Part shown: positions 15,302-64,000 of the stretch, piece after piece | Layout of the letters: each line of letters begins with the position of its first letter | Numbering within the stretch: the first letter of the stretch is position 1 | Assembly (NCBI GenBank): GCA_038087875.1 | Contig: JAXLNO010002266.1 | Span: 1 to 64,000 of the forward strand | From: Malacoraja senta | Lineage: Eukaryota | Direction: 5' to 3' | DNA length: 64,000 nucleotides | The notes under the pieces: model-generated | The model's database searches: none | What the model was told of the DNA's origin: nothing | The model's input: only the letters and a program-made list of their open reading frames with translations | Program-made: the position numbers and the translations under genes

Positions 15302-15528
15302 AGGACCTGTCCCACTTTCACGACCTAATTCACGACCTTTTTTACTCGTGGACATTTTTCATCATGCTAGAAAAACGCCTCGACCTACTTGATGCCACGA
15401 GTACCTATGACTAGCATCACGGCCTGCTACGATCTACCTACGACCTCGTGACGACCATGCTGCAAGTACGAGTCAAGGGCAAACTCAGCAGAGGTCGTGA
15501 ATTAGGTCGTGAAAGTGGGACAGGCCCT
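15302..15528. mobile_element. PIF/Harbinger-like MITE
   Basis: TIR of about 37 bp (AGGACCTGTCCCACTTTCACGACCTAATTCACGACCT) and a TTA TSD on both sides. Confidence 0.8.
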
Positions 15529-19201: not shown

Positions 19202-19341
19202 CAGATTTATAGGTTGCTTCTGATCTCTGGCATTCACGTATTTGTACATAAAACAGCATGCCAAAGCAAAGATAAAAATAAAAAGGAGGACTGGCAGGAC
19301 ACATCCAAACAGAATCATTTTAACCATTTGTTTTGCTGGAT
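19202..19341 (-). CDS. IL20RA: IL20RA exon 6 (TM helix ILFGCVLPVLLFIFIFALACCFMY plus Box1-like KQPINL)
   Basis: CAG/GTAAG boundaries, 140 nt, phase 1->0. Hydrophobic helix with the VLP motif, then YKY...P.NL as in IL20RA. Confidence 0.94.
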
Positions 19342-19494
19342 CTGTCAAATAAAGAGGAATAGGTAATGAAAAATGTACAACTACACTTGTAAAAACTATA
19401 AAAGTTCAGTATAAATCGAGTGAAAGTAAATTTATGATTTAGAAATAATGACATTGTATCAGAAGTGGAAGAATACGAAATAAAACAATTGGAT

Positions 19495-19977
19495 TCAAAA
19501 AATTCAAAACCGTCCGCGACTAAAAATAGGTTGCCGTTTAAAAAATCTTGTGATTTTTTAGTCGAAGGCGGTTGCGATGCTAGTTGAAGGTGGTTGCCGG
19601 AGGTTGCAGGTGGTTGCCGGAGGTTGCAGGTGGTTGCCGGAGGTTGCAGGTGGTTGCCGGAGGTTGCAGGTGGTTGCCGGAGGTTGCAGGTAGTGGAAGG
19701 AAAGACCTTCCACTACCTGCAACCTCTGTCAACCACCTTCAACTAGCATCGCAACCGGCTTCGACTAAGAAATTACCGATTTTTTAAACGACAACCTATA
19801 TTTAGTCGTGGCCAGTTTTGAATTTTTTTAAATAATCGCCGGAACATAGAAGAAGCGGGAACCACTTTCGACCATTAGGGAGACTGACAAAAACCTCCGG
19901 GAACCGCACGGAAACCTTGGGTGGAGCGCAAAGTCTCCAGAGGTTTCCATTCAGGTTTCCTAAGTGGGACAGGGGCA
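19495..19977. mobile_element. Rearranged Harbinger-like MITE with an internal fold-back and a 20-bp minisatellite
   Basis: Right end AAGTGGGACAGGGGCA|TAA. The left half is the reverse complement of its own internal sequence. Repeat (GGTGGTTGCCGGAGGTTGCA) x5. Confidence 0.72.
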
Positions 19978-20759
19978 TAAGTCTGCAAGCCTGAGGTGTC
20001 TCATCAGAAGACGAGTTGCAGTTCCTCTACTTGCATTGACTTTCACTAGAACAAAGTGAAAAGATAACAGGCAGAGTAGCCTCAGCAGTAGTGATATAAA
20101 GAATTGACGTTTCAGGTGAGAATTTAAATAACAGTTGACTGGAAACTTAGAGCCGTGTGTGTGAACTGATTGAGGAGTTCCATAAAGCAACAATTAGAGT
20201 AGAAAGGAACTGTGGATGCGGGTATATACTAAAGACAGACGCAAAGTTCTGGAGTAATTCAGTGGGTCAGGCAACATCCCTGGAGAAAATAATGGGTGGC
20301 GTTTCAGGTTGGACCCTTCTTCAGAAGCAGACGGAGTCAATGGAGCCTGGTCTATGTGATGGACTGAACTACTATCACTGAAGAAGGGTCCCGACCAGAA
20401 ATGCCACCCATCCATGTTCTCCAGAAATGCTGCGTGACTCCAGCAATGTGTCTATAAGCAGTCATTTGATCTATTTCTTGTGATTCTAGTGCAGTAAAGA
20501 TCACACCTTGAGCATTGAACATAGAAATTTTGTTTTCGTCTGTTTTTTATTTTTAGTGTGTGTTAAAAGTTTGTGTAAATGTTCTCCGGTTTGTTTTATT
20601 GCGAGCTTCTGCTTTTGCCCGAGGGGAGCAGAAAGGGGAAGGAATGGCTGGGATGGGACAAGCTCTCGGCTGCTTTTCTGAGACAGAGTGAAGTGCAGAT
20701 GGAGACAATGGTGGGGAGCCTGGTCCGTGTGATGGACTCGGCTACATCCACAACTCTGT

Positions 20760-21210
20760 CAATATATGATGAACGTTTGACGGCACTGGGCCTGTGCTCG
20801 CTGGAGTTTAGAACGATGAGGGGGGAACTTCATTGAAACTGACCGAATAGTGAAAGGCCTAGATAGGGTGAATGTGGGGAGGATGTTTCCACTAGTGGGA
20901 GAGTCTAGGACCAGAGGCCATTGCCTCAGAATAAAAAGACGTACCTTTAGAACGGAGATGAGGAGGGATTTCTTTAGTCAGAGGGTGGTGAATATGTGGA
21001 ATTCATTGCCACAGATGGCTGTGGAAGCCAAGTCAATGGATATTTTTAAGATGGAGATTGACAGATCCTTGATTAGTAAGGGTGTCAGGGGTTATGGGGC
21101 AAAGGCAGAAGAATGGGGTTGAGAGGGAAAGATAGATCAGCCATGATTGAATGGCGGAGTAGACTTGATGAGCCGAATGGCCTAATTCTGTTCATAGAAC
21201 TTATGAACTC
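20760..21210 (+). mobile_element. CR1 3' fragment in intron 5
   Basis: YDERL.ALGL.SLEFR and FFSQRVVNMWNSLP. Confidence 0.8.
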
Positions 21211-21427
21211 TCTGCAGAATACAGAATGATTTAATGTATAGGCCAAATAATTCCCTTCAAAGAAATATGTAAAAAGGAAACAGTGAAAGCAGCAAAGATA
21301 GATAATTAGAAGAGCTAATGGGATGGCTGGGCATAATGGTCTGCACTGTGATTTTCATGAATGCTGCATATGTTTAATATGTAATATTACATTTTTTAAT
21401 AGTTTCTCATTAAAATGGAATTCTCAC

Positions 21428-21572
21428 CTTTTGGTGTTGTTGTGCATTGAATTTCAGAAGGGTCACTTCTTCTCAAAGAGGAATGTTCCACTGACCAAAC
21501 AGTCACACAGTAAGTGGTGTCATGTTCCAATGTGTACACCTTTTTAAAATCACCATTTTCCAGGTAAATGCA
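21428..21572 (-). CDS. IL20RA: IL20RA exon 5 (CIYLENGDFKKVYTLEHDTTYCVTVWSVEHSSLRRSDPSEIQCTTTPK)
   Basis: TAG/GTGAG boundaries, 145 nt, phase 0->1. Has the LE..T.YCV.V...PSE.QC..T D2 signature. Confidence 0.93.
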
Positions 21573-22379
21573 CTAAAAGCATCAAATGTATAATCATTAT
21601 TTTCTTTAAGTAAATATTTCTTACAGGAATTTGATTCTTCAGATTTGGCATTGAAACAACGTAGTATAGATTAACTCAGATTTAAACCTTGTGTACAGAT
21701 CCTCCCCAGTTGACAAACACCTGTACATATGAACAAATGATTGGGAGAGAGTCGGGATGGATTTGCCAGCTGCTGCAGGCAAATTCCCCCATGTGGGAAC
21801 TCGGTCCACAGCTGCGTTTCTCCCTTGCAAACTGTTCGTGTTATATCACAGTGCTCAGGATTGGAACCATAAGACAGGAGCAGAATCAGGCCATTCGGTC
21901 CATCCAGTCCACTCTGACATTTAATCACGAATGATCTATTTTTCCTTTCCAACCCCATTCTCCTGCCTAACCTTTGACGCCCTTCCTAGTCAATCTCCGC
22001 TTTAAAAATACCCAATGGCTTGACCTCCACAGCCGTGTGTGGCAATGAATTCCAGATTCACCACCCTCTGGCTAAAGAAATTCTTCCTCATCTCCTTTTA
22101 TTCTGAGGCTGAACCCTGCTGTAACCCTTTTCTTATACGTAAATGCAAGAAAGAGTACTTGTGAAGACCTCAGTGCATGAACTCTGTGTATGACCTATGC
22201 TGGACTATTATGATTGTACATTATTATCAACATCTACTAGTGAATGAGTGAAACAAAATGACTGCTGTACATAGTTAGCACATTGCCAATGTCAACTGAG
22301 TTTAACATCGCCTTTATCAATATTCAGATCCATTGTAAAATGCCATTAGGTTAATATACAAAATAAAACTTTCTCTTAC

Positions 22380-22552
22380 CGATTTATTGATATTTCTGTC
22401 GGTGACAAGGATTTCAAATTTTAATTCATGAAACATTTTAGTCAGTGAAATAGATTGATGTAGATTGTACTGCCATTTTTTGGGAGGTGTCAAAATGATT
22501 GTGATGGAACAGACCCCAGCTTCCAGTTTTACTTTTGGGGAAGTGAAGATCG
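22380..22552 (-). CDS. IL20RA: IL20RA exon 4 (FNIII D2 N-half: TIFTSPKVKLEAGVCSITIILTPPKKWQ...TDRNINKS)
   Basis: CAG/GTAAG boundaries, 173 nt, phase 1->0. Aligns by eye with the IL20RA motif P.V.L....SI...LT.P.KW. Confidence 0.92.
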
Positions 22553-22738
22553 CTGAAAGATAAGCAAGTATTAAAATCAAAGTGCACAACATTTGCCATT
22601 TCAATCATAACTCAGTAACAGGTACTCAAAATAAGAACCGAAGATAAGTATGCCATTAATAGTCCCGTTGATTTATTTTCTTGAGAAACAGATTTTTAGA
22701 GTTAAGTCTGTGTTTTTACTCTTAGAACTGGACGTTAA

Positions 22739-23036
22739 AGGGCGGCATGGTGGCGCAGCGACAGAGTCTTGCCTTACAGCACCAGGGACCTGCATTCCTG
22801 ACTACGGATGCTGTCTATATGGAGTTTGAACTTTCTCCCCGTGATCTGCGTGGGTTTTCTCCGGGTGCTCCGGTTTCCTCCCAGACTCCAAAGCTGTACA
22901 GGTTTGTAGGTTAATTGGCTTTGGTAAAGAAAAGATACATTGTCCCTAGTGTCTAGGATAGTGTTAAGTGTGTGCAGGGATCGCCAGTCAGCATGGACTC
23001 ATTGGGCCAAAGGGCCTGTTTCCAAACCAAACTAAA
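22739..23036 (+). mobile_element. V-SINE (HE1-like)
   Basis: Same head, core and tail. Further copies at about 225-425(-), 4441-4695, 5480-5643(-), 7370-7667, 26833-27110, 34040-34290(-), 35050-35355(-), 46090-46392, 47597-47710(-), 50390-50526(-), 51535-51720 and 63273-63475. Confidence 0.8.
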
Positions 23037-23469
23037 CAATTAATTTTTCAAGAAATTGTCAGAGAAATTAACCATTATGTATAGATCTAGCTTTATTCTC
23101 CCTATTTTCTGTTCACTGCTTTACTGTATTTAAAGAAAGTAAAACTACATTTAAAGCAAGCAAAAAGATATGATGATAGTTAAACTCCGTCATCATGCCA
23201 AATTCATAATTGGGATTAATGTAGGAATGGAGAGGATGTGCAGTTGATGATAACTGTTTCCAAGGGCTCGTTTCCCTGCTCATGACTCAACGATTCTTCC
23301 ATAAATAAATTATTTCAAAAGAAATAAAGATTAAAAGTAATGGAAAAGTTTGCTGAGCCAGCAAAGTCCTCTTAAAGAAGAGAATGTGCTTCCTTGCCAA
23401 AGACTCACATTTAGTGTACAAGCAATAATGCTGAGTTTTCCTTTGTTTCCACGCTGTATCACACTGAGT

Positions 23470-23695
23470 TTTCCTCGGAGTGATACAGTGTGGAAACAGG
23501 TCCTTCGACCCAACTTGCCCACAGCGGCCAACATGTCCCAGTTACACCAGTCCCACCTGCCCGCATTTGGTCCATATCCCTCCAAACCTGTCCTATCCAT
23601 ATACCCGTCTGTTTCTTAACTGTTAGGATAGTCCCTGCCTCAACTACCTCCTCTGGCAGCTTGTTCCATACACACACCACCCTTTGTGTGAAATA
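23470..23695 (-). mobile_element. CR1 3' fragment
   Basis: VWNKLPEEVVEAGT. Confidence 0.75.
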
Positions 23696-25112
23696 GTTGT
23701 TGTTGCTTTGATGTTCTTAACATTAAGAACTGTATCTCCAGATTCAGGGACAGCTTCTTCCCAGCTGTTATCAGGCAATTGAACCAGCCTACCAACTTCT
23801 AGAGAGCAGACCTAAGCTATTACTGTATGTACTTTATTGGAGATACACGGACTATGTTTGATTGGACTTTATCTTGCACTAAACATTATTCACGTTATTC
23901 CCTTTATCATGTGTCTGTAAGCTGCGGATGGCTCGATGATAATCATGTATTTCCACTGACTGGTTTGCGCACAACAAAAGCTTTACAATGTACCTCGGTA
24001 CATGTGACAATAAACTAAACATTACCTACTAAAACAGTAAAATGAGAACGATTGAGAAATCTATTCTTTGTTTGTTTGCACTAAATGGGCAATAAAGAAT
24101 AGCATGGGATGCTCAACGTCAAAAATTTGAATCTACTGACATTAATCGAAATGAATTTCTCACAAATAGTACACAGTGAACCTCTTACTCCATGTGCAGA
24201 TTCTGTGTAATTGTCAGAGGGTAAAATAATAGTAAAATAATAATTAAATCCTTTGAAGTTTTGAAGGAATTTAACACGAACTCATATTATCCGTGTGTCT
24301 GCCTTTAATAAATTATTACTTCTAACACATAACGATTAATAGTGCACATGTAGAAACTATTAGATGAATAAACATGCAACTTGTGTGATGATGTTGACGA
24401 GAGTGTAAGAGGCTTCTAGAGTGGCATGGGTCACGTGCAGGCAGATGAGATTAGTTTATCTTGGCAGACATTGTGGACTGAAGGAGCTGTTCTCATGCTG
24501 TACTTCTCTATGTTCTTGGAGGAAAGAAAGTGTCAGGACAGGAGAAGTCACTGCATTTTGTTTGATATTTTGAAACCAAAGTAGCATTTACTCCATCACT
24601 GGCATCTATGTGAGTTTATCAAGTGTAAAGTATTGCTCATTAAATCAAGCTTAAAATGAAACATTTCAATGCTTTTCAGAATTAAATATAATGGATTTAT
24701 CAAGATTTACTTTGGTCATAATAGCATGGAAGGTGGCGTGTAGCACATATGCCATTCAATTAAGGCAACCATGCTTTAGACATGTCTGATATTTCTACAG
24801 AGGACTATCATTGATATTGGTCGCGCATTTACTGTGGGCTATTCAGTCACAACCAAATCAGCAAAAACCGGCATCAGTAATCAAATAACACTCTCTATAT
24901 TACACAAGGAAATACCTCTTAAAATCACTATGAATAACTTTGTTTGAATTGCATTGGAACATTAAAGATAAAGAACAAGATATGGTATTGAATCATAAGG
25001 CGGGGATAATTTAAAAGTCGATACAAATGATATACAAAGCTGTTTTTGTGTAATTCATGTCAATTTTCCATGAGTTGCATTCAGCTGGGGAGATACAAAG
25101 TATTGTACTTAC

Positions 25113-25291
25113 TTTCCATTTCTGGATTGAATCTTCCGCTTTTAATCCAATTTGAAAAGCCTGCTTCCGAAACAGACCTTACCCTGGCATAGTAATGTTC
25201 TTTGTAATATTCCGTTTCATTTGAAAGGTCACAATATGTTTTTGTGATATTCTGGCACTCAGCTTTGATCTTCCAATCTTTTTCTCCATAC
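25113..25291 (-). CDS. IL20RA: IL20RA exon 3 (YGEKDWKIKAECQNITKTYCDLSNETEYYKEHYYARVRSVSEAGFSNWIKSGRFNPEME)
   Basis: CAG/GTAAG boundaries, 179 nt, phase 2->1. Has the conserved C-x7-C-DLS.ET...YYARV...S.W..S.RF.P of IL20RA D1. Confidence 0.95.
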
Positions 25292-25429
25292 CTGATTTAG
25301 AAAATTACACAATTAATAACCTTGGCAAATACCGCATTTGTAATGTCACCCCCAGTATAAGGAAGTATGAAGAGTATACTGGGCCACCTGCCAGTTAGAT
25401 ACATATAACCCACAGGATCACATGGCTGA

Positions 25430-25780
25430 GGCTGAGGTGCATAAAATCATGAGGGGAATAGATAGGGTGAATGCACAAAGGCTTTTCCCCTGTGTAAGGC
25501 AATCAAGAACTTGAGGGTACAGGTATAGGTTTAAGATAAGAAGGGAAAGAATTAATAGGAACCTGAGGGGCAGCTTTTTCCACACAGATGGTGGTGGGTA
25601 TATGGATGAGCAATTATAAGAAATAGTTGAGATGGATAAAACAACAACATTTAAAAGATATTTGGACAGATATATGGATATGGGCCAAATGTGAGCAAGT
25701 GGGACCAGTTTAGATGGGGCATCTTGATCGACATGGACAAGTTAGGCTGAAGCATCTATTTCCATTCTGTAGGACTCTAA
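25430..25780 (+). mobile_element. CR1 3' fragment
   Basis: Same 3' consensus as the other CR1 copies. Confidence 0.7.
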
Positions 25781-26580
25781 TACTGGTAGATAGTAGATCA
25801 ATCAGAAGAGCGAGTAAATATTAAAATTATGGAAATGTGCTTATCACACTTCACTTACAACAAATTTCTAACATAGCAAGGTGACGAATCATAAAACTAC
25901 CGTGGAAAAAACAACATTACAATTGACATATTCACTTTTAGGTAGTCAGGTAGATGTTGATTAAACTGAAGATGTTATGTTCAAAATTAGCAAATGGGAT
26001 CAAACTGCCTCCAAATCTCAATGCAGGTAATGGATTTATTAATTTGAGAGAAATATTGAATTAAGCTCCAAGGTATTTAACCTTTACAATCTCTGTTTCA
26101 AATACCCAGATGGAATAAAAGGGAACGATTATCAACACATGGGTTTTTTCCTTTGAGTGGTTTATACCATAATCAAGAAATAAAATGAACTTGCTCAGGA
26201 AATAAGAGGAAATTGCTGCGATTACATGGACTGAACATGGTAATTAATCTAAGCCCACAAACGACATTTATAATCAGCACAAATATAAAAAAATTAAATC
26301 ACCAACAATTTTTAAGCCCTCAGTTATATACTTCACATCCAGCATAAAATAAGAATATACTAGAAACTCTCCCACAGTTGCAGTTTCATCTGCTGAGCGT
26401 TGCCAGTATTTTCTGTTTTATTTCAGATTTCCAGCAACAGCAGTTTGTTGATTTATTTCAATTCCAAAGCTGAATTCTAACAATTTTGAATCTCCCAATA
26501 AGGTTCTTTATCTCCCATGGTATGATAAATCTACCAGAACAGATATTGGGTGTGTTGGATGTGGGGCAAACGGACTCTAA

Positions 26581-26805
26581 TGGGACTGTCCCACAGACGA
26601 GTTTTTGTGCGACTACAGGCGACTGCCGCAAAGTTTTCAACATGTTGAACATTTTTCGGCGACAGTGGCGACAATTTTAGCTGTAGTAGGTTGTCATAGG
26701 TTGATGTAGGTGTTGTCGTAGGTGCTGTCATAGGTTGTCACCAGGTGTCGTAGGTGAATTACATTAAAACTAGTCCCTGACAGTCGCCCAAGTGGGACAG
26801 GCCCA
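26581..26805. mobile_element. Harbinger-like MITE
   Basis: Ends TGGGACTGTCCCAC and GTGGGACAGGCCCA, flanked by TAA and TTA. Confidence 0.7.
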
Positions 26806-29143
26806 TTAAGAAGATGCTGGCTTAATACTCAGTGGGAGGCATGGTGGCGCAGCGGTAGAGTTACTGCCTTACAACACCAGAGACACGCGTTCGATCCTCA
26901 CCCCCTGGTGCTATCTGCATGGAGTTTTATGTTCTCCCCGTGATCACATGGGCTTTCTCTGGGTGTTCCAGTTTCCTCCCACATTCCAAAGATGTGCAGA
27001 TTTGTGGGTTAATTGACTTCTGCAAATTGTCCCTAGTGTCTAGGATAGATAGGATGATTGTGAACACCACAGACTCTGTGGGCCTATGTTTCCATGCTAT
27101 ATCTCTAAATTGAACATAACTCAAGTTTAAACTCATGTTCATAAGTCATAGGAGGAGAATGAGGCCATTTGGCTCATTATAGTGATCGAGACATCCAAGG
27201 CACTTAATACAGCGAAAACCAGACATGATATTTTCAGTTAAACGAGAGCAGCAGCGGAAGAGGGTATCAATTCACAGCTGAACAAGACAAATTTAGGACA
27301 TTTTCCTTCAGTGTTCGAAAGTGGCAGAAGCAAGTGACTAATAGTTGTAATGTGTTGCTATGTGGAGCTAAAATATAGCATGTTTAAGAAACCATCTAAT
27401 AATGGAATATGAAGATGGTGGAGTTAATGTTTTGGGAGTGTGAAAGAAAACACGCTTGGTAGTACAGTTCTAAGTTGAACGTGCAAATGCTTTGCAATAA
27501 AATTAAAATCTTAGAAGTAACATGGGCAATGAGTTCATTCTAAAACCCTGTTCTTTATTCCAATAGTTGCCTCCATGTGTATACATGTCTAAAAGTGACC
27601 ATGCACAGGATGGTAGACAAAAATGCTGGAGAAATTCAGCGGGTGAGGCAGCATCTATGGAGCGAAGGAATGGGTGACGTTTCGGGTCGAGACCCTTCTT
27701 CAGACTGGCACAGGATGAGTTGGTTTGATGATTCTGAAACCCATGTGAAACAGTTGGGTAGATTGCACCAGATAAAATAATGCTGCTTTGTGTGCAAATT
27801 GATGCACAGATAGATAACAGATTGATGTAAAATATCTGTGTTATTACAGCGTTTAACACGTTGGTCACTCAGGTGAAAAATCCTACGAGAACTTGCAACT
27901 GCAAACGTGCTATTTAATCTTTTATATATTTTCACATCATCCCACTGTGTCACTGCAAAAAAAAACTTCACTCCAGTGGTACCTTTCTAATTCTAATCCT
28001 TTGCAAACACATAATACAAGAAGCAACACATTTAAAGTGAACACTTCGCATCCTTCAAAAGTTGAAAGTACAGGATTCAAAGACAAACCGATACTCCAAT
28101 ATAGTAGATCAGGGCAGCTTAATAAAATCACATTTCACAGCAGCTACTGAATATAATTTAATAACAATGAAGTCTGTATGCACATGGCTGAAATATTGTG
28201 GTTAACCAAATATGTAAATTCCTCAATAAAGTTGCTGGATTCAATTTTATGAATAATTGAGTTAAAATAACTCTCACTTTTCCACTCATATTCAGTTTGT
28301 TTTTCAATCATGGCACTTATTAAAAACAATTTTGAGATTTCCTAAATTACAAAATTCATTACAACATTCATTACAAAAACATTAAAAATGTAATAATTAG
28401 AAAGGACACATGGTGCAATGAGGCTCAATGCACACAATTTCAAAAGTACATTGAAATCAGTCTTGGATCATGAGATGATTTTTCCTGCTATCTGAAGGCA
28501 GTGACCTTTGCTACCTTTGCAAAATGGACCTGGGGAATTCCATTCAGTCACAATGTGGTGGATAAATGCACAGTTTTGGTACAGAGAGAACAGGAAGCTA
28601 CTAAAATACTTAATTTGAAAAAAATAAAATAATCACATTAATTTATTGATGATAGGGAATATAATGCCAAAAAACAATGGTAGCACACAGATGTATGAAA
28701 GTTTAAAAAAAAAGTATTTCATTTCTAATCTGGATGACCACAAGTCTTTGAGATAAGTCGATGAAGAAAGCTGATGACACAGATTGGTGTTGATTGAGAG
28801 AGTGAAGAATTTAGGTTATAACGCTCTGTGACTCTATGACTAACTAATCTGTCTGTCGGAGGCATAATAGAGGGAGAACAGAGGAGAGGGGAAAAAAGCA
28901 CAAACAACAGCAAAAAACATACTGAAACAGTGAGATACAGAACACTGCACCTGCTGGAACATCTGAAATCAAAGAGAACGCCAGAAAAGCATTCAGGCAG
29001 CGTCTTGGAAAAAAAAAGCTGAGTACCATCAAAATTGGCAAAGGATTGAAAAGCAAAATGAACTACTGCTGGAAATCTGGAACAAGCAGTCGCATTAAGC
29101 TCTAAATAACAATGAATGAATGGAGAATGAGAATAGTAATTAC

Positions 29144-29279
29144 ACTTTATATTGCACGCTGAACTGTTGCTTCCCAGGTGTTCTCCTAGTAGGCAGTTCC
29201 CAGTGTAGAACATTCTGCAAGTTTCGTGACGAGAAATGCAAATTTCTCGGTACAGGTAACATGTTTTCCTTGGAATGTC
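29144..29279 (-). CDS. IL20RA: IL20RA exon 2 (FNIII D1 N-half: ...LPVPRNLHFSSRNLQNVLHWELP...FSVQYKV)
   Basis: Poly-T tract plus AG acceptor and GTAATT donor, 136 nt, phase 1->2. Matches the class II receptor pattern LP.P.N..F.S.N..NVL.W...VQY. Confidence 0.92.
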
Positions 29280-30327
29280 CTAAAAAAAAAACAAAAAACA
29301 GCAATGTTAGAAATGTATGCGGCAGTCAGAATGGTACAAAGTAAAAATGCAGAAGGATTACCAACACTGAAAAATAACATGGTCACATTGGTGTATGCAC
29401 TCCAGAATATCTTCACGATTATAAAGGTCCAGCATGATTTTGCTGCTGCACATTGCAAACAATGAAGTCCCAAATTGTCACCATCTCCGCCCACAATCTG
29501 TCCTGCCACTTTCATTACATGCCCCAATACTCCCACTTCTGGAGGCAGAAATCTGCCCCAGTTCTCCTTCTAGAGCCGATTCCATTTGGTGCTTGGGTCA
29601 TCAACAGATTAGTGGATTGGTTTAAGGAGTTCTGCCACTAGCAGTGCTATTTGAGGTCAACTTGATCACCTTTAAGTAGCTGAAGCAAGACTTACAAGCA
29701 TTCGCGTGTGGTTGAGAAATATCAAAATACCAGTCCATTGCAGGTCATTATTTGCTACCTTGGTGCTTTGATATTTCAGGTGAATGGAGAAGAGAGAGAA
29801 ATATGTGGCCTTTGCACAAAAATCCCCAATTTTCCATTGTTTTATTTCTCTCTGCAATTTGCATTGTGTTGTATGACATAATCTAACTTTGCACAAATAG
29901 CCCCAAAACGCAATGAAATGTCCCTTCTTCTGGAAAAGCTAAAATAGCGTTATTAACAGATCAAGATTTCAGAAGGCAAGCCTGTAAATTATATAACATA
30001 AACCACATTTAGAAAGCCTACATATTGTCTCTGGCTATATTGGTTAGGTATTTTCCATCCTACATAATTTTTGTTCCATTGTGGTTTTGTCTCTCATCAG
30101 CAAAGCGTACTGTTTGTGGTTTCTGTGGCAATTCGAGACAGTTAATGCATGTCACTTTCTGTTGGTAGCCACCTCTTAGACTTCAGCTTTCTGCTTTCAG
30201 CTACCAGATGAACACGAGCCATTGTCATTGTCTGCTCTATTCCCAAGCGACATGGAAAAGCATAAAAATCATCTTATAAAACAAAAATGTATTGGGAAAC
30301 TGATACAATTTATTTATTGCACCCCTC

Positions 30328-30800
30328 CCCAGGTATCTTCCCCATGCAACCGCAGGAGATGCAACACCTGTCCCTATACCCCCTTCCTTGACTCTGTCTA
30401 GGGACCATAACAGTCCTTTCAGGTTAGGCAGAGGTTCATTTGCACCTCCTCCAACCTCATCTACTGTATCCATTGGTCACATTGTGGACTCTTAGACTAA
30501 ACGTAGACTGGGCGATCGTTTTGCTGAACACCTTCACTCAGTCCGCCTGGGCCTATCTGATCTCCCGGTTGCCAAACACTTTAATTCTCCTCCCATTTCC
30601 ACACTGACCTTTCAGTCCTGGGCCCCCTCCATTGTCAGTGAGGCCAAACACAAATTGGAGGAACAGTAACTCATATTTCACTTGGGCAGCTTACAACCCA
30701 GTATATGAACATTGATTTCTCAATCTTCAAGTAACCCTTGCTTTCCCTCTCTCTCCATCCTTCCCCCACCCAAGTCGTTGTACTAGCTTCACAGCTGTCT
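30328..30800 (+). mobile_element. Penelope-like element 3' fragment (GIY-YIG region); terminal repeat seen again at about 31345-31660
   Basis: Degenerate FPCNRRRCNTCP...QRF.CTSSNLIYCI...KRRLGDRFAEHL. Confidence 0.75.
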
Positions 30801-30859
30801 TGCTGACTCTCGTTGTCTGTCGCTCGATGAGAAAAGGATCAGGTAATATCTGACCATTT

Positions 30860-31340
30860 TCCATATTTCTGGGAGAGAGACTTCTGAGAAGACACATTGA
30901 CAGTTATTTGCAGGTTCAAAGGACTGTTGTCTGGCGTGGCAACTCTGAGGTGCTGATCACAGATAATGGGCCCCTGTTCACAGTGGATAACCGAGTGAGC
31001 TTCTCAAAATCCTGACAGCTCGTTCCACAGACATAAATCAAATCTCTTTCTGCGGGGTATGGGAAAGACAGAGAACAGTGAGGAAGGACAAAGGCCTACC
31101 AAAACCTGCTAAAGTGGCAGTCAGAGCTCTCTATCCATCCACAATATTTAATCCCGAGGGTTGATAAACTGCTCTCTGCAGAGACTTGTGAATGGATGAA
31201 GCAGAACTCTGTACCTAACAACAGAAAGGCCGTTAGAAAAGAAGCACAAAACAATGGACAACTTGAGATGGCCAAAGTAAGGAAGGCACCACAATGAAGA
31301 TGCCAATAACTTCCATTGATGAGTTGTGGACACAATAATT
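30860..31340 (+). mobile_element. Degenerate Gypsy-like integrase remnant
   Basis: EVLITDNGPLF resembles the integrase (S/T)DNG.QF motif. Heavily decayed. Confidence 0.4.
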
Positions 31341-31801
31341 CTCCATTTCAAGTAACCCTTGCATTCCCTCTCTCATCGACCCTCCCCCACCCTAGTCGTC
31401 ATGGTAGTTCTACTGGTGGCATCCATATATCCCTTCATTATCACCTCTTCCACAGTCAGCAATACACCATTGTGGGCTCCACCTTTCCTTGGCCATCGGT
31501 GCTGGCTGTGATTGTTCTGAACCTTTTCATACCTCTAGTTTTCCTCTCCCCCGACTCTCAGTCTGAAGAAGGATTTCAACCCAAAACATCACCGATTCCT
31601 TTTCTTCAGAGATGCTGCCTGATTTGCTGAGTTTCTCCAGCATTTTGTTCCTTTCTACAGACTACATTGGACAGATGCCAGATTGACCAGAGTGGTGACT
31701 CAATGTCCAAGCTCACAAAGGTGCATATCACTTATTGAAGGACATCATATTAGGAAGACCACCAGAAGAAATGTGTAGGAAGGAACTGCAGATGCCGAAA
31801 C

Positions 31802-31838
31802 GGGTCTGAAGAAGGGTCCCAACCCGAAACGTCACCTG
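31802..31838 (+). ncRNA. Penelope-type minimal hammerhead ribozyme motif (best-formed copy)
   Basis: GGGT-CTGAAGA-A-GGGT(ccca)ACCC-GAAAC-GTC-ACCT: core CUGANGA/GAAA, stem II, ACGT palindromic stem III and a short stem I. Confidence 0.5.
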
Positions 31839-31878
31839 CTATCTGACCCGCTGAGTTACTCCAGCTTTGTGTCCAGAC

Positions 31879-32108
31879 CAAGGGTTCCCAACCTGGGGTA
31901 AATTTACCCCCAGTGGGTAAATTTCACCTACCCAGGGGGTAAATTTGTTGATTCTGGATTTGTACATATTTTTTCTCATTGACTGTGTTTGGTTCTGGTA
32001 TACCGGTATCTGTTCGTCATTAGTTATTCATAATTATGTGAAATAACATTGTTATGTGCTATTAAAGTTGCCAGGGGTAAACGGGACAAAAAAGGTTGGG
32101 AACCCCTG
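31879..32108. mobile_element. hAT (Charlie-type) MITE
   Basis: TIRs CAAGGGTTCCCAACC and GGTTGGGAACCCCTG. 8-bp TSD GTCCAGAC / GTCTAGAC (1 mismatch). Confidence 0.85.
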
Positions 32109-32792
32109 GTCTAGACCAACAGAAGAATTTGCTTGACAGCTACAGCTATGGAGAAAGGAGGGTGCACCAATAAACCTGTAGAACAAGAATGCCACAGCTT
32201 GACAACAGATGCATGGAACCAGTTAGGATTGCTAGATTGTATCTTGAGGACTTTGTGAAGTACAACAGTTGACAATTGCTTTGATGTCTTTTAAAAAAAA
32301 TCTACTCCAGGAAGAATTTGTCATGTATTTAGAAATAATTACTGGTTTAAAGCAGTCACTTAGTGGTGCCATGTGACTATCTGCTCTCTGGGCTGCAACT
32401 ATGTACCACAGAAAATTCCTTAGTCAGTCTGTGTGAAAGAATGTTGCCGAACACCATGTCTTTCACAATAGGATTGTTGGTAGTTTGAAGTACCGTCTAT
32501 TTTGAGTTTCTTTGTTGGAGAGTGACGTGTGTGATACTGAGATACTAACTAAACTGTCCCAGCTCCAAAGTAAATATCTACCCAACACAGTGGAAATTTG
32601 ACTTGATACTTCATGCTCTCAAATAGCAGGACAAATCACTTCACCCACTCACTATCCCATCAGCCCACTCCCAATCATCAGTAGGGCGATGGCTCATTCA
32701 CAGTGCTATTAAACAACACTCAATATCCAATTAGCTTGCTTGCTACTGCGTAGGAAGGAACTGCAGATTTAACTGCTGGTTTAAACTGGAGA

Positions 32793-32968
32793 TAGACACA
32801 AAATGCTGGAGTCACCCAGTGGGACAGGTATCTCCGGAGAGAAGGAATGGGTGATGTTGCGGGTCGAGGCCCTTCTTCAGACTCTTTGAAGAAGGGTCTC
32901 GACCCAAAATGTCACCCATTCCTTCTCTCCAGAGATGCTGCCTGAGTTACTCCAGCATTTTGTGTCTA
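32793..32968. repeat. Inverted pair of Penelope-like terminal repeats (palindrome of about 175 bp)
   Basis: TAGACACAAAATGCTGGAGT...cttcttcaga|..gaagaaggg...ACTCCAGCATTTTGTGTCTA. Similar pairs at about 20235-20455, 36500-36730 and 40575-40740. Confidence 0.75.
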
Positions 32969-35900
32969 GCCTGCTCACAACTGCTTAGTTTGGGTTTTAT
33001 TGGAACCACTCCACTCCACTCCAGACCTCATAGCAGCCTTATAAAGGAGAAACAAAGGTGATGTTCCTGTCAAAGAACTTTCAACAGAAGACACCTAGAA
33101 AGCTGGTTTGGCGCAAGTCCATTTTTGTACAATGTGGATGCAATGGATCTCATGGGCTTCATCTGTGCAGCAAATTGTTATGATTCTATGTTACTGTAGC
33201 ACAATAACATAGGAAGGAACTGCAGATACTGGTTTTACCAAAGATAGACACAACGTGCTCGAGTAACTTAGAGTCTATGGAGAAAAAGGACGAGTGACTT
33301 TTTGGGTCAGGACCCTTCTTCAGACTGCATTCATTTGCATTCATTTGCATCCCATTCATTGCTATCTGTATTTTAGTTTAACCCCATTCTTTGATGGTGC
33401 ATCAACTGCATTAATAAGAACTTGTTTAGCATTCCCTTCATAAATGCAAAGACAAAATACCTAATTGATCATAAGTGAAGCATGAGCAAGTTAACTAAGA
33501 TAAACAAAAACACTTGCATTATCAAAGCAAAATCAAAATACCAAGAATGCTGAATTAAAAGTAGAAAATACTGTAAATACTGCTTGCAAAAGTTACCACT
33601 TTAAAATTGATTTACCAGTTATGAAAGATTATTATCCTAAAAAAAAATCAACTGTTGCTTACTTCACAGATGCTCAAATTAACTTGGAATATGCCATGAA
33701 AATCACCCAACCCTCTTAATCTTAACTTCAGTCAGTTGAAGCCCATTCTGCTAAACCTTTCTAACAAAGTAGATATCCTCAATCAGAAATTAATTATGTG
33801 GAATGTGGCTGTATCACATCCAAGACAACTGTATCTTTCCTTACATCTAGATCACCACACAGCCATGGACACCTCCACGCCCTGCCCAATTGCACAAAGC
33901 CCTTTGCCTGCTTGTATTCCACTGCTATTGCAATAATGGCCATTATTTTACTAGCCTCTGTAAATTACTTGTTGAGCCGGTAAGCCAAATTCTCAATGAA
34001 CATCAACACTAATTGATCTCTAGCATTTAGTTGAATTTACAGGCCCTTCGGCCCATCAAGTCCCCGACAATGAGTGATCATCCTTATACTAGTTCTATCC
34101 TACACATTATGGACAATTTACAGAATTAACCTACAAACTGACACGTCTTTGGGATGTGGGAGGAAACCGGGTGCACCCAGAGAAAACCCATGTAGTCACA
34201 GGAAAAATGAGCAAACTCCACACAGACAGCAGGTGGGGTTAGGATCGATCCTGTGTCTCTGGTGGTGTGAGGCAGCATCTCTACCACTTAAATTGTACTC
34301 TGTTTTATGATTTTTATTCTGTGATGTACTGTCCTATGATGCCCGTTCCTGTGATGTACTGTCGTTCTATGTTCTAAATGCCCATTTATTCTCCAACAAG
34401 CTACAACCTCCTCTTATGGTGTAATCGAGAGAATTAAATTTAGCTCCGAGGGCTAACGGAATCAATGGATATGGGGAGAAAGCAGGAACGGGGTACTGAT
34501 TTTGGATGATCAACCATGATCATATTGAATGGCGGTGCTGGCTCGAAGGGCCGAATGTCCTACTCCTGCAACTATTTTCCATGTTTCTATGTTTCTAACC
34601 TAGATAACCTCACATTTTCCCTCATTACACTTCAATTACCGTTCTTTGTCCAGTTATTTAGCCTGTCAGCATCTCCTTGCAACCACACTTGTCATTCCCA
34701 GAATTTATTATGCCGCCTTTATTTGTAAACCTGGATTCATTACATCCCTTCATCCAAGAAGTGAGGTTCCAGGCTCGATCACTCAGGATCCATAATTTTC
34801 ATGGGTAAATAATATGGATATTCACAATCCTGGGAGTTGAAATTCCACAACCTCTTGAGCCTTTATCATATGGTTTGTTAAGTTTAAAATAAATGTTAAT
34901 AGCTGAGATTTCATTTATGATGAATCTAATCACCTCCAGTACATCATAGTAGGTTTGGTTATCCAGTAATAGAAAATAGAGATCTCAGACCTTGTATAAA
35001 TCTTGTGGTCTAGCAGACAATCATAACATCCACTGCCCCCCAGTATGCATTTAGTTTAAAGATGCAGCATGGAAACAAGACTCTTCAGCCCACCAAGTCC
35101 ATGCTGACTATCAATCACCCGTTTACACTAGTCCTGGTTATCCCACTTTCGCATCAACTCCCGACACACATTAGGAGCAATTTACAGAAGCCAGTTAAGT
35201 AGCAAACCCAGATGTCTTTGGGATGTGGGATGAAACCTAGTAATTCACAGGGAGAACTTGCAAACTCCACACAGACAGCACCCGAGTTCGGGATTGAACC
35301 TGGGTCTCTGGCGCTGTGAGGCAGCAGGTTTTCCAGCTGCCCCATTGTGCTGCCCTTTGTGTCATGAACTACCTGCAGCAGGGAATTCAAGGCACTGTGG
35401 AGATACCAACAGCATTGTATATACAAAATCATCCAAACATCCTTGCAGGTTATGCAAACCCCTGTCATTCACCACTCGATGGCTACCATTCCCAGCACCA
35501 AAGCCCTCAGTTGTCTCCTATGGACTGGCAACATCCTTTGACAGGTATTTTAGTCCACAGCCTGTCATTGCAAGAGATTATCAGTTGGAGAGGAAAGCAT
35601 TCAAGAATGGTCTCAAAATGTTTTTGTAGAAGTATAACATACTTAAAGGTTCATGGAAATTGCTGCCCATTGAGAAGGAGAAGCAGGTTCAAGATGGCGC
35701 TGAATTTCATCTATCAGGGCTACATACAAGCTCAGCATAAAGTAACAGCAAGCTGCACGCTATCTTGCAAACTACCCATCTGCCATCTCCTGCCCTTCCC
35801 GTGACTGTGTCAACCGGTTTCCTGATGACCTCATTAGTCAAAGGGGATCCTGCAGACTTTGCCACAGATGGAATGAAAGCAAACTATCCTCCACCTTGAG

Positions 35901-37654
35901 CCAACAAAAGAATATCCTCAACAGGTAAAGATATGTGAGACCAAAGATTAGAGGTGGAACATTGATATCCTTAGAATAATAAAGAGGGACAGGAAGATAA
36001 AATATGTAGGAAGGAATTGCAGATGCTGGTTTACACCGAAGATCGACACAAAAATCTGGGGTAACTCAGCGGGTCAGGCAGCATCTCCGGAGAGAAGGAA
36101 AAGGAATGCCTATAAAAGTGAAAAGGATAGTCATGAACCTATAACGTAATCATGAACAGCAAGAGAACGCGAGGGATGTATGTTTAATGTTTATGAGCAA
36201 GGTGTAGGTAGCTAATTAAGAAAGAGACCAGAAAACACATAGCCAAAGCAATAAAATGAGTTCAAAATGCAAGTAGAGATAATTAAAGGCAATGATATCA
36301 TAATTATTTCAAAATTTAAAGGGAATGTTGAGGAGACAAATAGACGATAAAGGTCACAGTTCTGTTGAAGGTCTCCGATCTGAAACATTCACAGATGCTG
36401 CCTGATCTTCTGAATGTTTTCAGCATTTTCTGTTTTACTTCTGATTTACAGCATGTGGCTTACATTATTTTCATTCTCCAGATTAGTAGCTCAGAAGACA
36501 GACACAAAATGCTGGAGTAACTCTGCGGAAGAGGCAGCATCTCTGGAGAAAAGGAATGGGTGACGTTTTGGGTCGAAACACTTCTTCAGTCTGAGAGGAC
36601 TATCAGTCTGAAGAAGGGTTCCAAACTGAAACCCATTCCTTTTCTCCAGAGATGATGCCTGACCCGTTGAGTTACTCTGCATTTTGTGTCCATCTTTGGT
36701 GTAAACCAACATCTGCAGTTCCTTTCTACACATTAATAGTTCAGAACTCTGGCTGCTAATCAAGTTACATAAAACACTGTTAACACTGCACCCTTCTCTT
36801 TTCTGCTCAGCCCTCAACTTCCCCAGGCTTGCAATAGCTCCCAGACTCCAATCCTCCCTTGGTCTCCCTCCATTTCTTTCATTGCCATCCCTCTAGCAAT
36901 CCACAGCCCAGTCAACATCCTCCACTAATTCTGCAAGGACAAAACCAGCAAAAGAAAAAGAAATGCAATGAACTGCAAATGTAGGAATCTTGAGTGAAAC
37001 ACAGAGTGCTGGAGTAACTCTGAGAGTCAGGCAGCATCTGTGAAAGGAATGGATAGATGAAAATACTTAAAGGTTTTTACTTGCATGATCTTTTCTGTTG
37101 TATAGGGTTCATCACGCTAATAAAAATATTGCAATGGGATAAAGGAATGCGATGGTGACACCCAAGATTCAATTTACGTGCTTTTATTGGGAGCTGAATA
37201 ACTTTTAGACCAAAGCATTTAAAAGTGTATTAGGGCATTTTTCTGCAAGATTGACCTGCAATCTGCAGACAATAATCGGCATTTACCTGCAGACTTACCA
37301 AATCCAAGTAAAACATCTTGAAAAGATTCATTCAGGAGAATGGGCTTAGGAGGGAGAGATAGATCAGCCATGATTCAATATCTTGTAGACTTGATGGGTG
37401 GAATGGCCTAATTGTAATCCTATCACTTAAGACATGACCATTACTTTAGAGGTGCGTTATGAATGAATGCAAGCTGTTGTTGGTTTGCTTTTTCCCTTAG
37501 TACTTCACCAAAACCAATAAAATGTCGATAACTAATGAAAACTAGAATAAAATATTTAAAGGTTTTATATAGTTAATAACTGTGATGCCCCAAACTCGCT
37601 GGTTATGGGGAAGAGAATCCGACCCATGTCCACACGGAACTGAAACAATGCGAC

Positions 37655-38032
37655 ATACTCTGGAGTTTAGAAGGATGAGAGGGTAACTTATTGAAACATA
37701 TAAGATTATTAAGGGTTTGGACACGCTAGAGGCAGGAGACATGTTCCCGATGTTGGGGGAGTCCAGAACCAGGGGCCACAGTTTAAGAATAAGGAGTAAG
37801 CCATTTAGAATGGAGACGAGGAAACACTTTTTCTCACAGAGAGTTGTGAGTCTGTGGCCGGTTCTTTGGATACTTTCAAGAGAGAGCTAGATAGGGCTCT
37901 TAAAGATAGCGGAGTTAGGGGATACGGGGAGAAGGCAGGAATGGGGTACTGATTGTGGGTGATCAGCCATGATCACATTGAATGGCGGTGCTGGCTCGAA
38001 GGGCCGAATGGCCTACTCCTGCACCTATTGTC
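37655..38032 (+). mobile_element. CR1 3' fragment (second subfamily, tail gaatggcggtgctggctcgaagggccgaatggcctactcctgcacc)
   Basis: Tail shared with about 2330-2475, 15750-15900, 34440-34590 and 61141-61435 (minus). Confidence 0.8.
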
Positions 38033-38449
38033 TAACTTTGGCACAAGGGAACGAAAATCAACAAACACCAGGGCTGAATAAAAAGGACAGATTGTGGAAA
38101 ACACCGGGAATTGCGGCGCATTCCCAGTTTCACCTTTCTAAATTCCCATTTCCAGTTTCTGCAGTTTGTTTCTTCCCAAAGCATTGGGGACGCATCACTT
38201 TGCAATTTCCCCGCGATTATTATGTCCAAACACTGTACTGCAGAACTTCATTGCTTCGCGGGTCAATTAGAAGCAAGTAGTATTGCTCCATTGTAGTTCC
38301 CGTTGGGCAGCAACAGTGACAACAGAAACCCTTTTCTAAAACAAAAATCAAACGCGAACGCAAGCAGTGAATCCGATTTAGAATGAGGATCAAAACAAAC
38401 GCGCGGTAATAACAAGGGGAGGGGGAGTTGAAGTGATATTCAGTCTTAC

Positions 38450-38510
38450 CTCTTGCAGACAGAAGAATGAGCAGGGGAACGGGGAAAAGCCAGGTTAGGT
38501 CCATGTTCAT
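38450..38510 (-). CDS. IL20RA: IL20RA exon 1 (signal peptide MNMDLTWLFPVPLLILLSAR)
   Basis: Hydrophobic leader followed by a phase-1 G|GTAAG donor at 38449. The second ATG (38504, aacATGg) has the better Kozak context and may be the true start. Confidence 0.8.
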
Positions 38511-62155: not shown

Positions 62156-62778
62156 TTATGTAAAATCTGGCTTCTCACAAATGTCCTGATTGATATATTC
62201 TGGAGATGGAGATAAGAGCTTTGATTGTACTACCTCCTGATCTTGACATTTTTCTTCAGACTGGGCGCAGAGTTGACATTGGCAGAGCTCCCTGGATAAT
62301 CTATGTCGTCCGATGTTGTCATGTCTTTGGTCCAGAGATAACAAGGGGTCTAATTCTGCCACCATCTCTACATAATCAGAGCCAGTAAATGTGGGTGTTT
62401 CAAGATAATTACAGAGTATCATGATATCCAGGGGAATGGAGCTAGGATCAAATATTTTGCATTTAAAACTACCTGGGGATTCAACGTTGATATATTTTTT
62501 GCAAGGTGCCTTTGCTGCACACTTGTATTGAAACCGCAAGGTGCTGGTTTGTTTTGAGAGTTCTGTGAGTTCCCATTTGTCAATATATGTTTCTTCAACG
62601 ATTGGAGGTGAAAACACAACAGTCTCCTGCTCTTTTTTATTCCAGGTTGTCAACACTGCAGGGTAATGTAGCTTAGGGTCAAACACATACTTGTATTTAA
62701 AGCATAAATAAATGGAAAGTGTAATCAGGACTAAAGCCCCACCTGCTGAGCAGACAATCACTATCCAAGCACTTGACT
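62156..62778 (-). CDS. Second class II receptor, terminal exon: TM (WIVIVCSAGGALVLITLSIYLCF), Box1-like HYPAVL, and a cytoplasmic tail of about 180 aa ending YINQDICEKPDFT
   Basis: CAG acceptor in phase 1, in frame with the 201-aa track ORF. Hydrophobic helix followed by a KYKY stop-transfer segment. Confidence 0.85.
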
Positions 62779-62874
62779 CTGCGGATTAAAACACAGATAA
62801 AAGGACAGTATGTGAACACAGTTTGCAAATCACCAAAGTCTGTTTATCTGAACAGCAAATAATTTGTTGCTCAC

Positions 62875-63034
62875 CTGCTAGTGTTACACACTGCTCCTTG
62901 CTCAAGTCACCAACGTTATCATTGAGTGAAACCTCTGTTCTAACAGAAATGCAGTAGATCGTTCCGGTGCTTAGATGCTGGATCTCAAAGGTTTCATTTT
63001 TTGTAATGTAAGTCCTCTGGGGCTCCAAATCAAT
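62875..63034 (-). CDS. Second class II receptor, D2 C-half exon (IDLEPQRTY...LSTGTIYCISVRTEV...SKEQCVTLA)
   Basis: CAG acceptor (an in-frame alternative starts at 63016) and a phase-1 G|GTGAG donor, 160 nt. Has the L..GT.YC.SV...S.EQC.T signature. Confidence 0.85.
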
Positions 63035-63845
63035 CTGGCAGTTGGGCAAACAAGTAATGAAACGGAAACTAATTATGCAGGCGCTAGGAACTGCAGATGC
63101 TAGTTTACCAAATAAAAAGACACAAACTGCAGCGGGCCAGGCAGCATCTCTGGAGAATATGGATAAGTGATGTTTTGGGTTGGGTCCTTTCTTCAGACTG
63201 ATTGTGGTAGGGGGAGAAAGCAGGAAGAGAGGTAGGTGCGGGACACAGTGATAGGTAGTTACACGTGAGTCCAGAGTTTGTATGTTCTCCCCGGGTGCTC
63301 CGGTTTCTTCCCACACTCCAAAGACATACAGGTTTGTGGGCTAATTGGTTTTGTATAAATGTAAATTGTCCCTAGTGTGTGTAGGATAGTGTTAGTGTGC
63401 GGGGATCGCTGGTCGGGCACAGACTCAGTGGGCCGAAGGGCCTGTTTCCTAGCTGTATCTCTAAACTCAACTAAACTTCAGGTGAGGAGGGAGTTTGATT
63501 GGTAGATGGTTGAACAAAGGCAAAAATGTGAGATATGGAGTTGGGGAAGCCAGAGAAAGGAATATAAGCAGAAGGGGAAGGGGGTGGGCGGCGGCAGAGG
63601 GAGGGGAATGGGAGAAGTGGGTGCACATCCAGGTAGGGCACAGGGAAGAGAGAAGAAGAAAAGGGAGGGAGGGTAGGGGTGTTTGTAGATAAGGCCTAAA
63701 ATTGGAGAATGCAATGTTCATTAAGCGCCTTGAGTATTAGAAAGGCGCTATATAAATCCAATCCATTATTATTATTATTATTTAAGCTATGCAATTATGT
63801 ATGCTTTGAAAGGAGTAGAAGGTAAACCAGGGCAAAGATTCTCAC

Positions 63846-64000
63846 CTGATCTTTTGCTTTGACTGATAAGATTATATGATATTTGACTTCATGATATGTG
63901 TCTTTCACTGATTGGCTTCCATTTCCCTTTTTGAAGGCTGTGCGGGGAGCAGTCAATTTAATCAAAATTGACTTTTCTAAGGGAATCACTTCAGTCTCTG
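63846..64000 (-). CDS. Second class II cytokine receptor, D2 N-half exon, cut by the window edge (PETEVIPLEKSILIKLTAPRTAFKKGNGSQSVKDTYHEVKYHIILSVKAKDQ)
   Basis: Open frame ending at a phase-0 CAG|GTGAG donor. Resembles the equivalent IL20RA/IL22RA1/IL22RA2 exon (SI.I.LTAP...S..D.Y..L.Y). Confidence 0.8.

Follow-up and report, generated by a model that had tools for sequence, protein, structure and literature searches.

Class II cytokine receptors form a small family whose membership is regarded as constant from sharks to humans. The minus strand at the end of a 64,000-nucleotide stretch of DNA from the skate Malacoraja senta (positions 1 to 64,000 of contig JAXLNO010002266.1, assembly GCA_038087875.1; the whole stretch is hereafter called the window) carries the 3' end of a receptor gene directly upstream of IL20RA, and this raises the question of whether the gene is a known family member, a membrane-bound form of the soluble decoy IL22RA2, or an additional chain. 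Comparison of exons, orthologues and neighbouring genes indicated that it is probably an intact R1-type signalling class II cytokine receptor gene, the third member of the IL22RA2-IL20RA cluster, with an ectodomain of the IL22RA2 lineage. It is referred to here as the membrane gene.

Exons, domains and orthologues of the membrane gene

Between 64000 and 62156 on the minus strand, three exons in the same reading frame make up the 3' end of a class II cytokine receptor gene (Table 1). A preliminary description of this DNA had assigned to them the second fibronectin type III domain (D2), a transmembrane (TM) helix, a Box1-like YPAVL motif and a tail of about 180 residues, and the reading frames, Pfam matches and hydropathy agree with this assignment. 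The translation of the first exon, D2a (64000-63846), opens with ETEVIPLEK, continues with SILIKLTAPRT and ends in VKAKDQ, and is 96% identical to residues 125-176 of the Leucoraja orthologue. This exon is cut by the end of the window, since no stop codon is met up to 64000 and the Leucoraja orthologue is five codons longer here (TVIGPP..). Both cysteines of the D2 pair (..TIYC.. and ..EQC..) are encoded by the second exon, D2b. The two exons match consecutive parts of the Pfam profile PF09294 (Interfer-bind), D2a at profile positions 13-51 (E 0.064) and D2b at 58-102 (E 9e-7).

The TM helix encoded by the last exon had a mean Kyte-Doolittle hydropathy of 2.32 in its best 19-residue window, and the helix was aligned and hydrophobic in all eight orthologues compared. 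After the stalk and this helix the last exon reads KYKYVFDPKLHYPAVLTTWN, with HYPAVLTTWN directly behind the helix, and the tail of about 180 residues then runs on to ...SPEYINQDICEKPDFT and the stop codon. The LPKS and YDKPH motifs, which had been reported missing from the translation, were indeed not found in the translated last exon. This exon is a single continuous open reading frame (ORF) also in Leucoraja, Amblyraja, Heptranchias and Callorhinchus, and the tail ORF is intact in three of three skates (window, Leucoraja and Amblyraja); the window and the Amblyraja DNA are 95.6% identical. For the window gene, the splice junctions are supported by canonical sites, by phases that are conserved and by NCBI models of other species that agree with them.

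Searches with the tail exon matched a skate cluster (XP_055491895.1, Leucoraja erinacea, 438 amino acids, "IL20RA-like") and the stingray protein XP_059838502.1 (Hypanus sabinus). Orthologues with signal peptide, D1, D2, TM helix and tail were found in Leucoraja, Hypanus, Heptranchias, Heterodontus, Mustelus and Cetorhinus (435-461 amino acids for the full-length orthologues; proteins of 442-546 in the last four, which were identified by searches from the Leucoraja protein and by alignments), and truncated models in Rhincodon, Chiloscyllium and Amblyraja. The ectodomain of the orthologues consists of two fibronectin type III domains, PF01108 (Tissue_fac, D1) and PF09294 (D2), and the D1 cysteine pair is invariant in the alignment. 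Predictions of the protein exist at NCBI for at least eight species, and one orthologue group is hidden there behind inconsistent automatic names, "IL20RA-like" (the commonest), "IL22RA2(-like)", "IFNAR2-like" and "uncharacterized". As judged from these gene models, the gene is conserved in every sampled cartilaginous fish, including skates, rays, sharks and a chimaera. Word-indexed homologue searches, the last of them seeded with membrane, soluble and IL20RA sequences aligned together, returned cartilaginous-fish proteins only.

The orthologue in the elephant shark (Callorhinchus) is the protein named "interleukin-22 receptor subunit alpha-2" by NCBI (379 amino acids as modelled, about 450 unspliced), and it has a TM helix, a matching Box1 region and a C-terminal YINQ. 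Its last exon is one continuous ORF, from which the NCBI model splices out 71 internal codons (14519-15232 of the examined MU249834.1 stretch). The unspliced tail is collinear throughout with the elasmobranch tails, and the 71 removed codons are conserved in shark and ray tails, with two invariant tyrosines among them; their removal is either an alternative isoform or an artefact of the model. In Amblyraja radiata (CM021370.1; 12707-14550 of the examined stretch) the NCBI model has 166 amino acids and ends after D1 in retained-intron sequence, and intact exons for D2, the TM helix and the tail, all of them without annotation, follow 1.3-3 kb past its end.

The soluble neighbour and family placement of the ectodomain

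Whether a separate IL22RA2 lies further upstream, a check proposed in the preliminary description, was examined in other species. In three species (Leucoraja, Amblyraja and Callorhinchus) the membrane gene is preceded, at a distance of about 5 kb, by a soluble class II receptor gene of five exons, and in Heptranchias by a 198-amino-acid soluble-type gene at about 8 kb. The Leucoraja soluble gene lies on the same strand as the membrane gene and encodes a 229-amino-acid product with Tissue_fac and Interfer-bind domains; in its reconstructed exons 2-5 the splice sites are all canonical and the phases typical of the family. Its frame ends C-V-T-T-F, four residues past the D2 cysteine, which is the architecture of IL-22BP, and the soluble gene stops at this same distance from the cysteine in Leucoraja, Amblyraja and Callorhinchus. 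The Callorhinchus milii copy (2193-4946 of the examined MU249834.1 stretch; exons 2-5, with exon 1 not located) has canonical splice sites, is apparently intact and is unannotated. It ends C-I-G-T-L followed by a short read-through, and no TM-like ORF was found in the 5 kb past its end.

With the soluble gene upstream and IL20RA downstream, the cartilaginous-fish cluster thus consists of the soluble gene, the membrane gene and IL20RA. The membrane gene had been placed at the syntenic position of IL22RA2, which was half right, because it does lie directly upstream of IL20RA but the next slot upstream is held by the soluble gene. A published synteny list for the elephant shark gives olig3, ifngr1l, ifngr1, il22ra2, il20ra and slc35d3, with one entry between ifngr1 and il20ra (PMC8863823 supplement), and the NCBI elephant-shark protein named as that "il22ra2" entry is the membrane gene.

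Two side observations concern the soluble gene. A relic phase-1 donor, G|gtaag, stands after the end of D2 in both Leucoraja and the chimaera, in the skate as TTT TAG G gtaagt right behind the stop codon (5085-5100) and in Callorhinchus at the same place (4940-4955; positions of the examined stretches). From its sequence and position, this donor looks like a footprint of the descent of the soluble gene from a gene with further exons. In Hypanus sabinus, the annotation places no soluble receptor upstream of the orthologue but a calpain gene, about 7.4 kb distant and oppositely oriented; stingrays may have a rearranged cluster, may have lost the soluble gene, or may carry it without a gene call.

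A maximum likelihood (ML) tree of 16 ectodomains, all from cartilaginous fish, resolved three clades. The membrane clade (eight species, 95/92) was sister to the soluble clade (three species, 95/93), with a joint node of 100/100, and IL20RA was about 1.9 changes per site away. Ectodomain identity was 38-42% between membrane and soluble proteins and 30-35% between either of them and IL20RA.

Comparison with the families of bony vertebrates was made by scoring profiles against PDB sequences, a cruder substitute for a phylogeny that includes bony-vertebrate sequences. The membrane-gene profile scored 150 bits on human IL22RA2, 130 on IL20RA and 93 on IL22RA1, and at most 69 bits on IL10RB, IFNAR1, IFNGR1, IL10RA, IFNLR1 and tissue factor (48-60 on the IFNGR1 structures, 48 on IL10RA and 45 on IFNLR1). 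The soluble neighbour, as the sum of four exon profiles, gave about 130, 95 and 107 bits on human IL22RA2, IL20RA and IL22RA1, and the batoid IL20RA profile gave 115, 189 and 97. Taken by domain, D1 of the membrane gene scored 100.6 bits on IL22RA2 and 79.2 on IL20RA, and D2 scored 37.3 and 40.4, respectively. A mosaic with D1 from IL22RA2 and D2 from IL20RA was considered and dropped, since D1 prefers IL22RA2 (by 21 bits) and the D2 scores are tied, which makes no clear mosaic. When the two D2 exons of the window were searched against the PDB on their own, only marginal matches resulted. Foldseek, run with a weak AlphaFold model, placed the IL22RA2, IL20RA and IL22RA1 families on top (24-30% identity), with IFNGR1 at 19-21%; neither these results nor the profile scores group the gene with IFNGR1 or IL22RA1, the outcome that the preliminary description had named as fatal to its proposal.

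By these sequence comparisons, the ectodomain belongs to the IL22RA2/IL20RA/IL22RA1 subgroup, and its nearest relative is the adjoining soluble gene. The sister position to the soluble gene, together with the best human match being IL22RA2, suggests an ectodomain of the IL22RA2 lineage. D1 of the membrane gene also shares with IL22RA2 (IL-22BP, teleost CRFB9) a K/Q-x-Y/F-G loop and the C-D-L-T and A-R-V-R-A blocks, and both genes lie in the cluster with IL20RA. IL-22BP, however, lacks a TM helix and tail and ends four residues past the D2 cysteine (PMC8634938), whereas the membrane gene adds a TM helix and a conserved tail of 180 residues; in cartilaginous fish the secreted architecture is found in the upstream soluble gene and not in the membrane gene. 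The membrane gene had been proposed to be either an ancestral membrane-bound IL-22BP or an extra R1-type chain. Each of these proposals is partly right: since the soluble gene is separately present upstream, the membrane gene is an extra chain and no substitute for the decoy, and its ectodomain is of the IL22RA2 lineage.

The presence of Callorhinchus in each clade indicates that the duplication that gave rise to the membrane and soluble genes predates the chimaera-elasmobranch split. As measured in the ML tree, each of the two clades has a stem (0.45-0.47) roughly as long as its whole crown is deep (about 0.5-0.7). If rates were roughly steady, stems of this length would mean that the duplication took place long before cartilaginous and bony fish separated, although an acceleration after the duplication would weaken this argument. 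The soluble gene is no nearer to human IL22RA2 than the membrane gene is, whereas a true orthologue pair (IL20RA) stands apart by 74 bits; this points the opposite way on the age of the duplication. A review of IL-22BP regards the protein as a TM-less homologue of IL-22R from an old duplication (PMC8634938). The chances are about even that the membrane gene was lost in bony vertebrates or that bony-vertebrate IL22RA2 is its truncated descendant.

The cytoplasmic tail and possible soluble forms

The tail was aligned among eight orthologues, including the unspliced chimaera ORF, and the column numbers given here refer to this alignment. The TM-plus-tail exon contains 28 columns that are invariant across the eight species. 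In the Box1 region these are P34, P39, L42, W45 and N46; the proline and leucine of the PxxLxF motif are conserved in all class II receptors and make a JAK1-specific contact with the FERM domain (PMC5394478). Downstream of an acidic run, F55 and P57 are invariant and Box2-like. The invariant tail positions also include L-E...F around Y-L-E-Q-P, and the stretch that carries Y95 and Y135 (Table 1) is conserved in the unspliced Callorhinchus ORF too. At the C-terminus, P-x-Y-I-N is kept from chimaera to skate, with the final Q replaced by H in Heterodontus. The motif at this end is of the YxxQ type, which in IL-10R1, as GYxxQ, recruits STAT3 (PMC12652433).

Between the window and the two other skates, the ratio of non-synonymous to synonymous substitution rates (dN/dS) of the tail exon was 0.23-0.24 (10-13 synonymous and 9-12 non-synonymous changes). 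The invariant columns and this ratio argue for a tail that is constrained and working, and we read it as a JAK1/STAT3-type signalling chain, with the binding of JAK1 and STAT3 predicted from the motifs.

The C-terminal end differs among the orthologues. The skate proteins stop 8-11 residues after YINQ (window 62156-62185), without a ..NNWGLxxQ.. end. Sharks and the chimaera keep the ..NNWGLxxQ.. C-terminus, an ending similar to the ..EHWGLxxQ of IL20RA tails (window 13476-13530).

A soluble product of the membrane gene itself may also be envisaged. The intron before the TM exon is short everywhere (96 nt in the window, Leucoraja and Amblyraja, 85 in Callorhinchus and 108 in Heptranchias). Read through in the window (62779..62874), it gives 29 codons and then a stop, and an in-frame stop was present in all other species compared. 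Retention of this intron would therefore yield a secreted ectodomain. In Narcine, a predicted isoform lacks the TM helix and has an unrelated 38-residue end in place of the TM exon.

The most likely mechanism can be proposed as follows. The D1-D2 elbow would bind an IL-22-like or another IL-20-subfamily cytokine, and the chain would pair with a short R2 chain, either IL10RB or IL20RB. JAK1 would sit on the membrane-proximal Box1 (P-x-x-L), and the C-terminal YINQ, once phosphorylated, would recruit STAT3, while the other two invariant tyrosines, of the Y-I-N and Y-x-x-M types, may contribute signals of the Grb2 and PI3K types. Competition for the ligand of the membrane receptor would come from the soluble neighbour and perhaps also from a soluble isoform that retains the intron.

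Genomic surroundings, alternative explanations and significance

IL20RA lies next downstream on the same strand, as had been described, at a distance of 23.6 kb from the membrane gene (Table 1). The earlier statement that no other receptor exon lies between the two genes was borne out by tblastn searches of 38600-62150 with 16 receptor ectodomains, in which nothing scored below E 0.15. Simple repeats are present in this interval in addition to the transposable-element sequences and the run of undetermined bases (N) listed in Table 1, and a purine-rich, low-complexity tract of the GAGAGG type (61480-61850) lies just 3' of the membrane gene, beside that run. The concern that a conventional IL22RA2 might be hidden in the run was addressed in four other species (Leucoraja, Amblyraja, Callorhinchus and Heptranchias), where no receptor exon was found in the 7-10 kb downstream of the orthologue.

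Table 1. Positions of the receptor exons, tail motifs and neighbouring features in the window
Feature	Position	Strand	Description
Exon D2a	63846..64000	-	First half of D2, ETEVIPLEKSILIKLTAPRT...VKAKDQ; donor gtgag; 5' end beyond the window
Exon D2b	62875..63034	-	Second half of D2, IDLEPQRTY...EQCVTLA; acceptor ...ccag; phase-1 donor G|gtgagc
Short intron before TM exon	62779..62874	-	96 nt, gt..ag
Last exon	62156..62778	-	Extracellular stalk, TM helix and entire cytoplasmic tail; TAA at 62158-62156
TM helix WIVIVCSAGGALVLITLSIYLCF	62699..62767	-	23 residues (WIVIV...IYLCF), hydrophobic
Box1-type motif PAVLTTWN	62639..62662	-	Class II PxxLxF; P39 and L42 invariant; Thr at the F position; W45 and N46 invariant
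Two further invariant tyrosines	62372..62494	-	Y95 in K-Y-[IV]-N-[IV]; Y135 in [DN]-Y-x-x-M/T
C-terminal YINQ	62186..62197	-	YxxQ STAT3-docking-type motif; invariant P192, Y194, I195, N196
IL20RA, next gene downstream	13476..38504	-	Seven coding exons; 85-93% identical to skate IL20RA protein
IL20RA exons 1-3	~38504-38430; 29262-29144; 25291-25113	-	
IL20RA exons 4-5	22552-22380; 21572-21428	-	
IL20RA TM exon	~19342-19202	-	
IL20RA tail exon	~14528-13476	-	
Long interspersed nuclear element	56552-60013	-	1153-codon uninterrupted ORF, endonuclease and reverse transcriptase
Separate endonuclease fragment	53667-54365	+	Between the two receptor genes
130-N stretch	61011-61140		Between the two receptor genes

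Several points weigh against reading the membrane gene as an intact signalling receptor of the IL22RA2 lineage. The window holds only the 3' half of the gene, the 5' exons falling beyond position 64000, and the AlphaFold model was weak (predicted local distance difference test score, pLDDT, 62.6). RNA support was looked for in public runs and none was found; the runs containing the stretch were DNA contigs reading through introns (four examined). Human IL22RA2 leads IL20RA by only 20 bits, whereas the lead is 74 in a true orthologue pair. In the PxxLxF motif, Thr occupies the F position. Alignment with IL20RA tails by hhalign covered the TM/Box1 stretch only (E 0.016, probability 2.8%), and a search with the tail among 1.84 billion representative proteins returned two batoid clusters only; this search missed even the chimaera tail and is therefore silent on bony vertebrates. 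Searches of the Atlas gave no usable match with the tail and family-level names only with the whole protein. At the sequence level, the tail is thus far without demonstrable homology to any characterised signalling tail.

These points bear on the alternative explanations. Going by "interleukin-20 receptor subunit alpha-like", the name used most often by NCBI, the gene would be a tandem duplicate of IL20RA, a second IL-20R1, and IL20RA (teleost CRFB8) is indeed a neighbouring R1-type chain on the same strand with a TM helix, a Box1 and a long tail. Human IL20RA is the second-best PDB match and marginally the best for D2 alone, Foldseek puts IL20RA first, and the WGLxxQ end seen in sharks and the chimaera is alike in the two genes. 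A duplicate of this kind is nevertheless unlikely. In the tree the sister of the membrane gene is the soluble gene and IL20RA is distant, the ectodomain is more similar to the soluble protein than to IL20RA, including the true copy downstream in the window, and D1 prefers IL22RA2. The 130 bits scored on human IL20RA fall short of the orthologue-level similarity of the true batoid IL20RA (189 bits). The TM and tail exons are separate in IL20RA but fused in the membrane gene, the IL20RA tail has about 370 residues compared with 180, and the two tails had no significant similarity beyond the TM/Box1 stretch. Alternatively, the product could be a membrane-tethered, non-signalling decoy or a decaying relic, its tail not being a functional signalling module. 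The DNA-only nature of the public runs, the non-hydrophobic residue at the Box1 F position, the loss in skates of the C-terminal WGLxxQ, the 71 codons dropped by the Callorhinchus model and the Narcine isoform without a TM helix would all fit such a product. We consider it improbable, given an ORF that is intact in every species examined, including three skates, the low dN/dS of the tail exon, and invariant tail columns that span the chimaera-elasmobranch split and include the Box1 P and L and three tyrosines.

It is very doubtful indeed that the gene is the orthologue of another named receptor, namely IFNGR1, IL22RA1, IFNLR1, IL10RA or IFN-upsilon R1. In favour of this, the five receptors are R1-type chains that share one domain plan, and one of them, IFNGR1, belongs to this cluster in other vertebrates. 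The profile scores of 45-60 bits on IFNGR1, IL10RA and IFNLR1 and 93 on IL22RA1, compared with 150 on IL22RA2, argue against this, as does the absence of LPKS and YDKPH. IL22RA1 (IL-22R1) is a signalling chain for IL-22 and IL-20-subfamily cytokines via JAK1 and STAT3 and the third-best human match, but its match covers D1 and part of D2, with none listed for D2 alone at E <= 0.01, and its locus, myom3-il22ra1-ifnlr1, is a different one that is present in the elephant shark too. In the same elephant-shark supplement (PMC8863823), ifnur1 has clic2 and faah2 as its neighbours, and ifngr1 has an entry of its own upstream of the "il22ra2" whose present namesake is the orthologue of the window gene. 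IFN-upsilon R1 (CRFB12) is excluded by its separate locus, clic2-ifnur1-faah2, because the membrane gene stands beside IL20RA. An additional IL22RA2-lineage chain with a predicted signalling tail is the preferred reading.

The gene had been called uncharacterised. This is correct for the literature searched in full text, where no paper describing an IL22RA2-like receptor with a membrane anchor was found for cartilaginous fish, but NCBI predictions of the protein do exist. A 2025 survey traces IL-22RA1/2 to bony fish only, and comparative work that lists elephant-shark ifngr1-il22ra2-il20ra does not mention the membrane anchor and tail of the "il22ra2" protein (PMC8863823 supplement).

As a tentative proposal, to which we would give somewhat less than an even chance, the gene may be the ancestral signalling form of IL22RA2. 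The IL-22 decoy of bony vertebrates would then have arisen from a working receptor by loss of the last exon, and cartilaginous fish would keep a second IL-22-type JAK1/STAT3 axis beside IL22RA1, with a tandem-encoded decoy. The interest of the locus would rise if a phylogeny showed the gene to be this ancestral form.

In conclusion, if the reading given here is true, the extra chain with its soluble sister would be a concrete model of how a secreted cytokine decoy arises from a receptor, and cartilaginous fish may sense IL-22/IL-20-type signals by means of a receptor absent from bony vertebrates.

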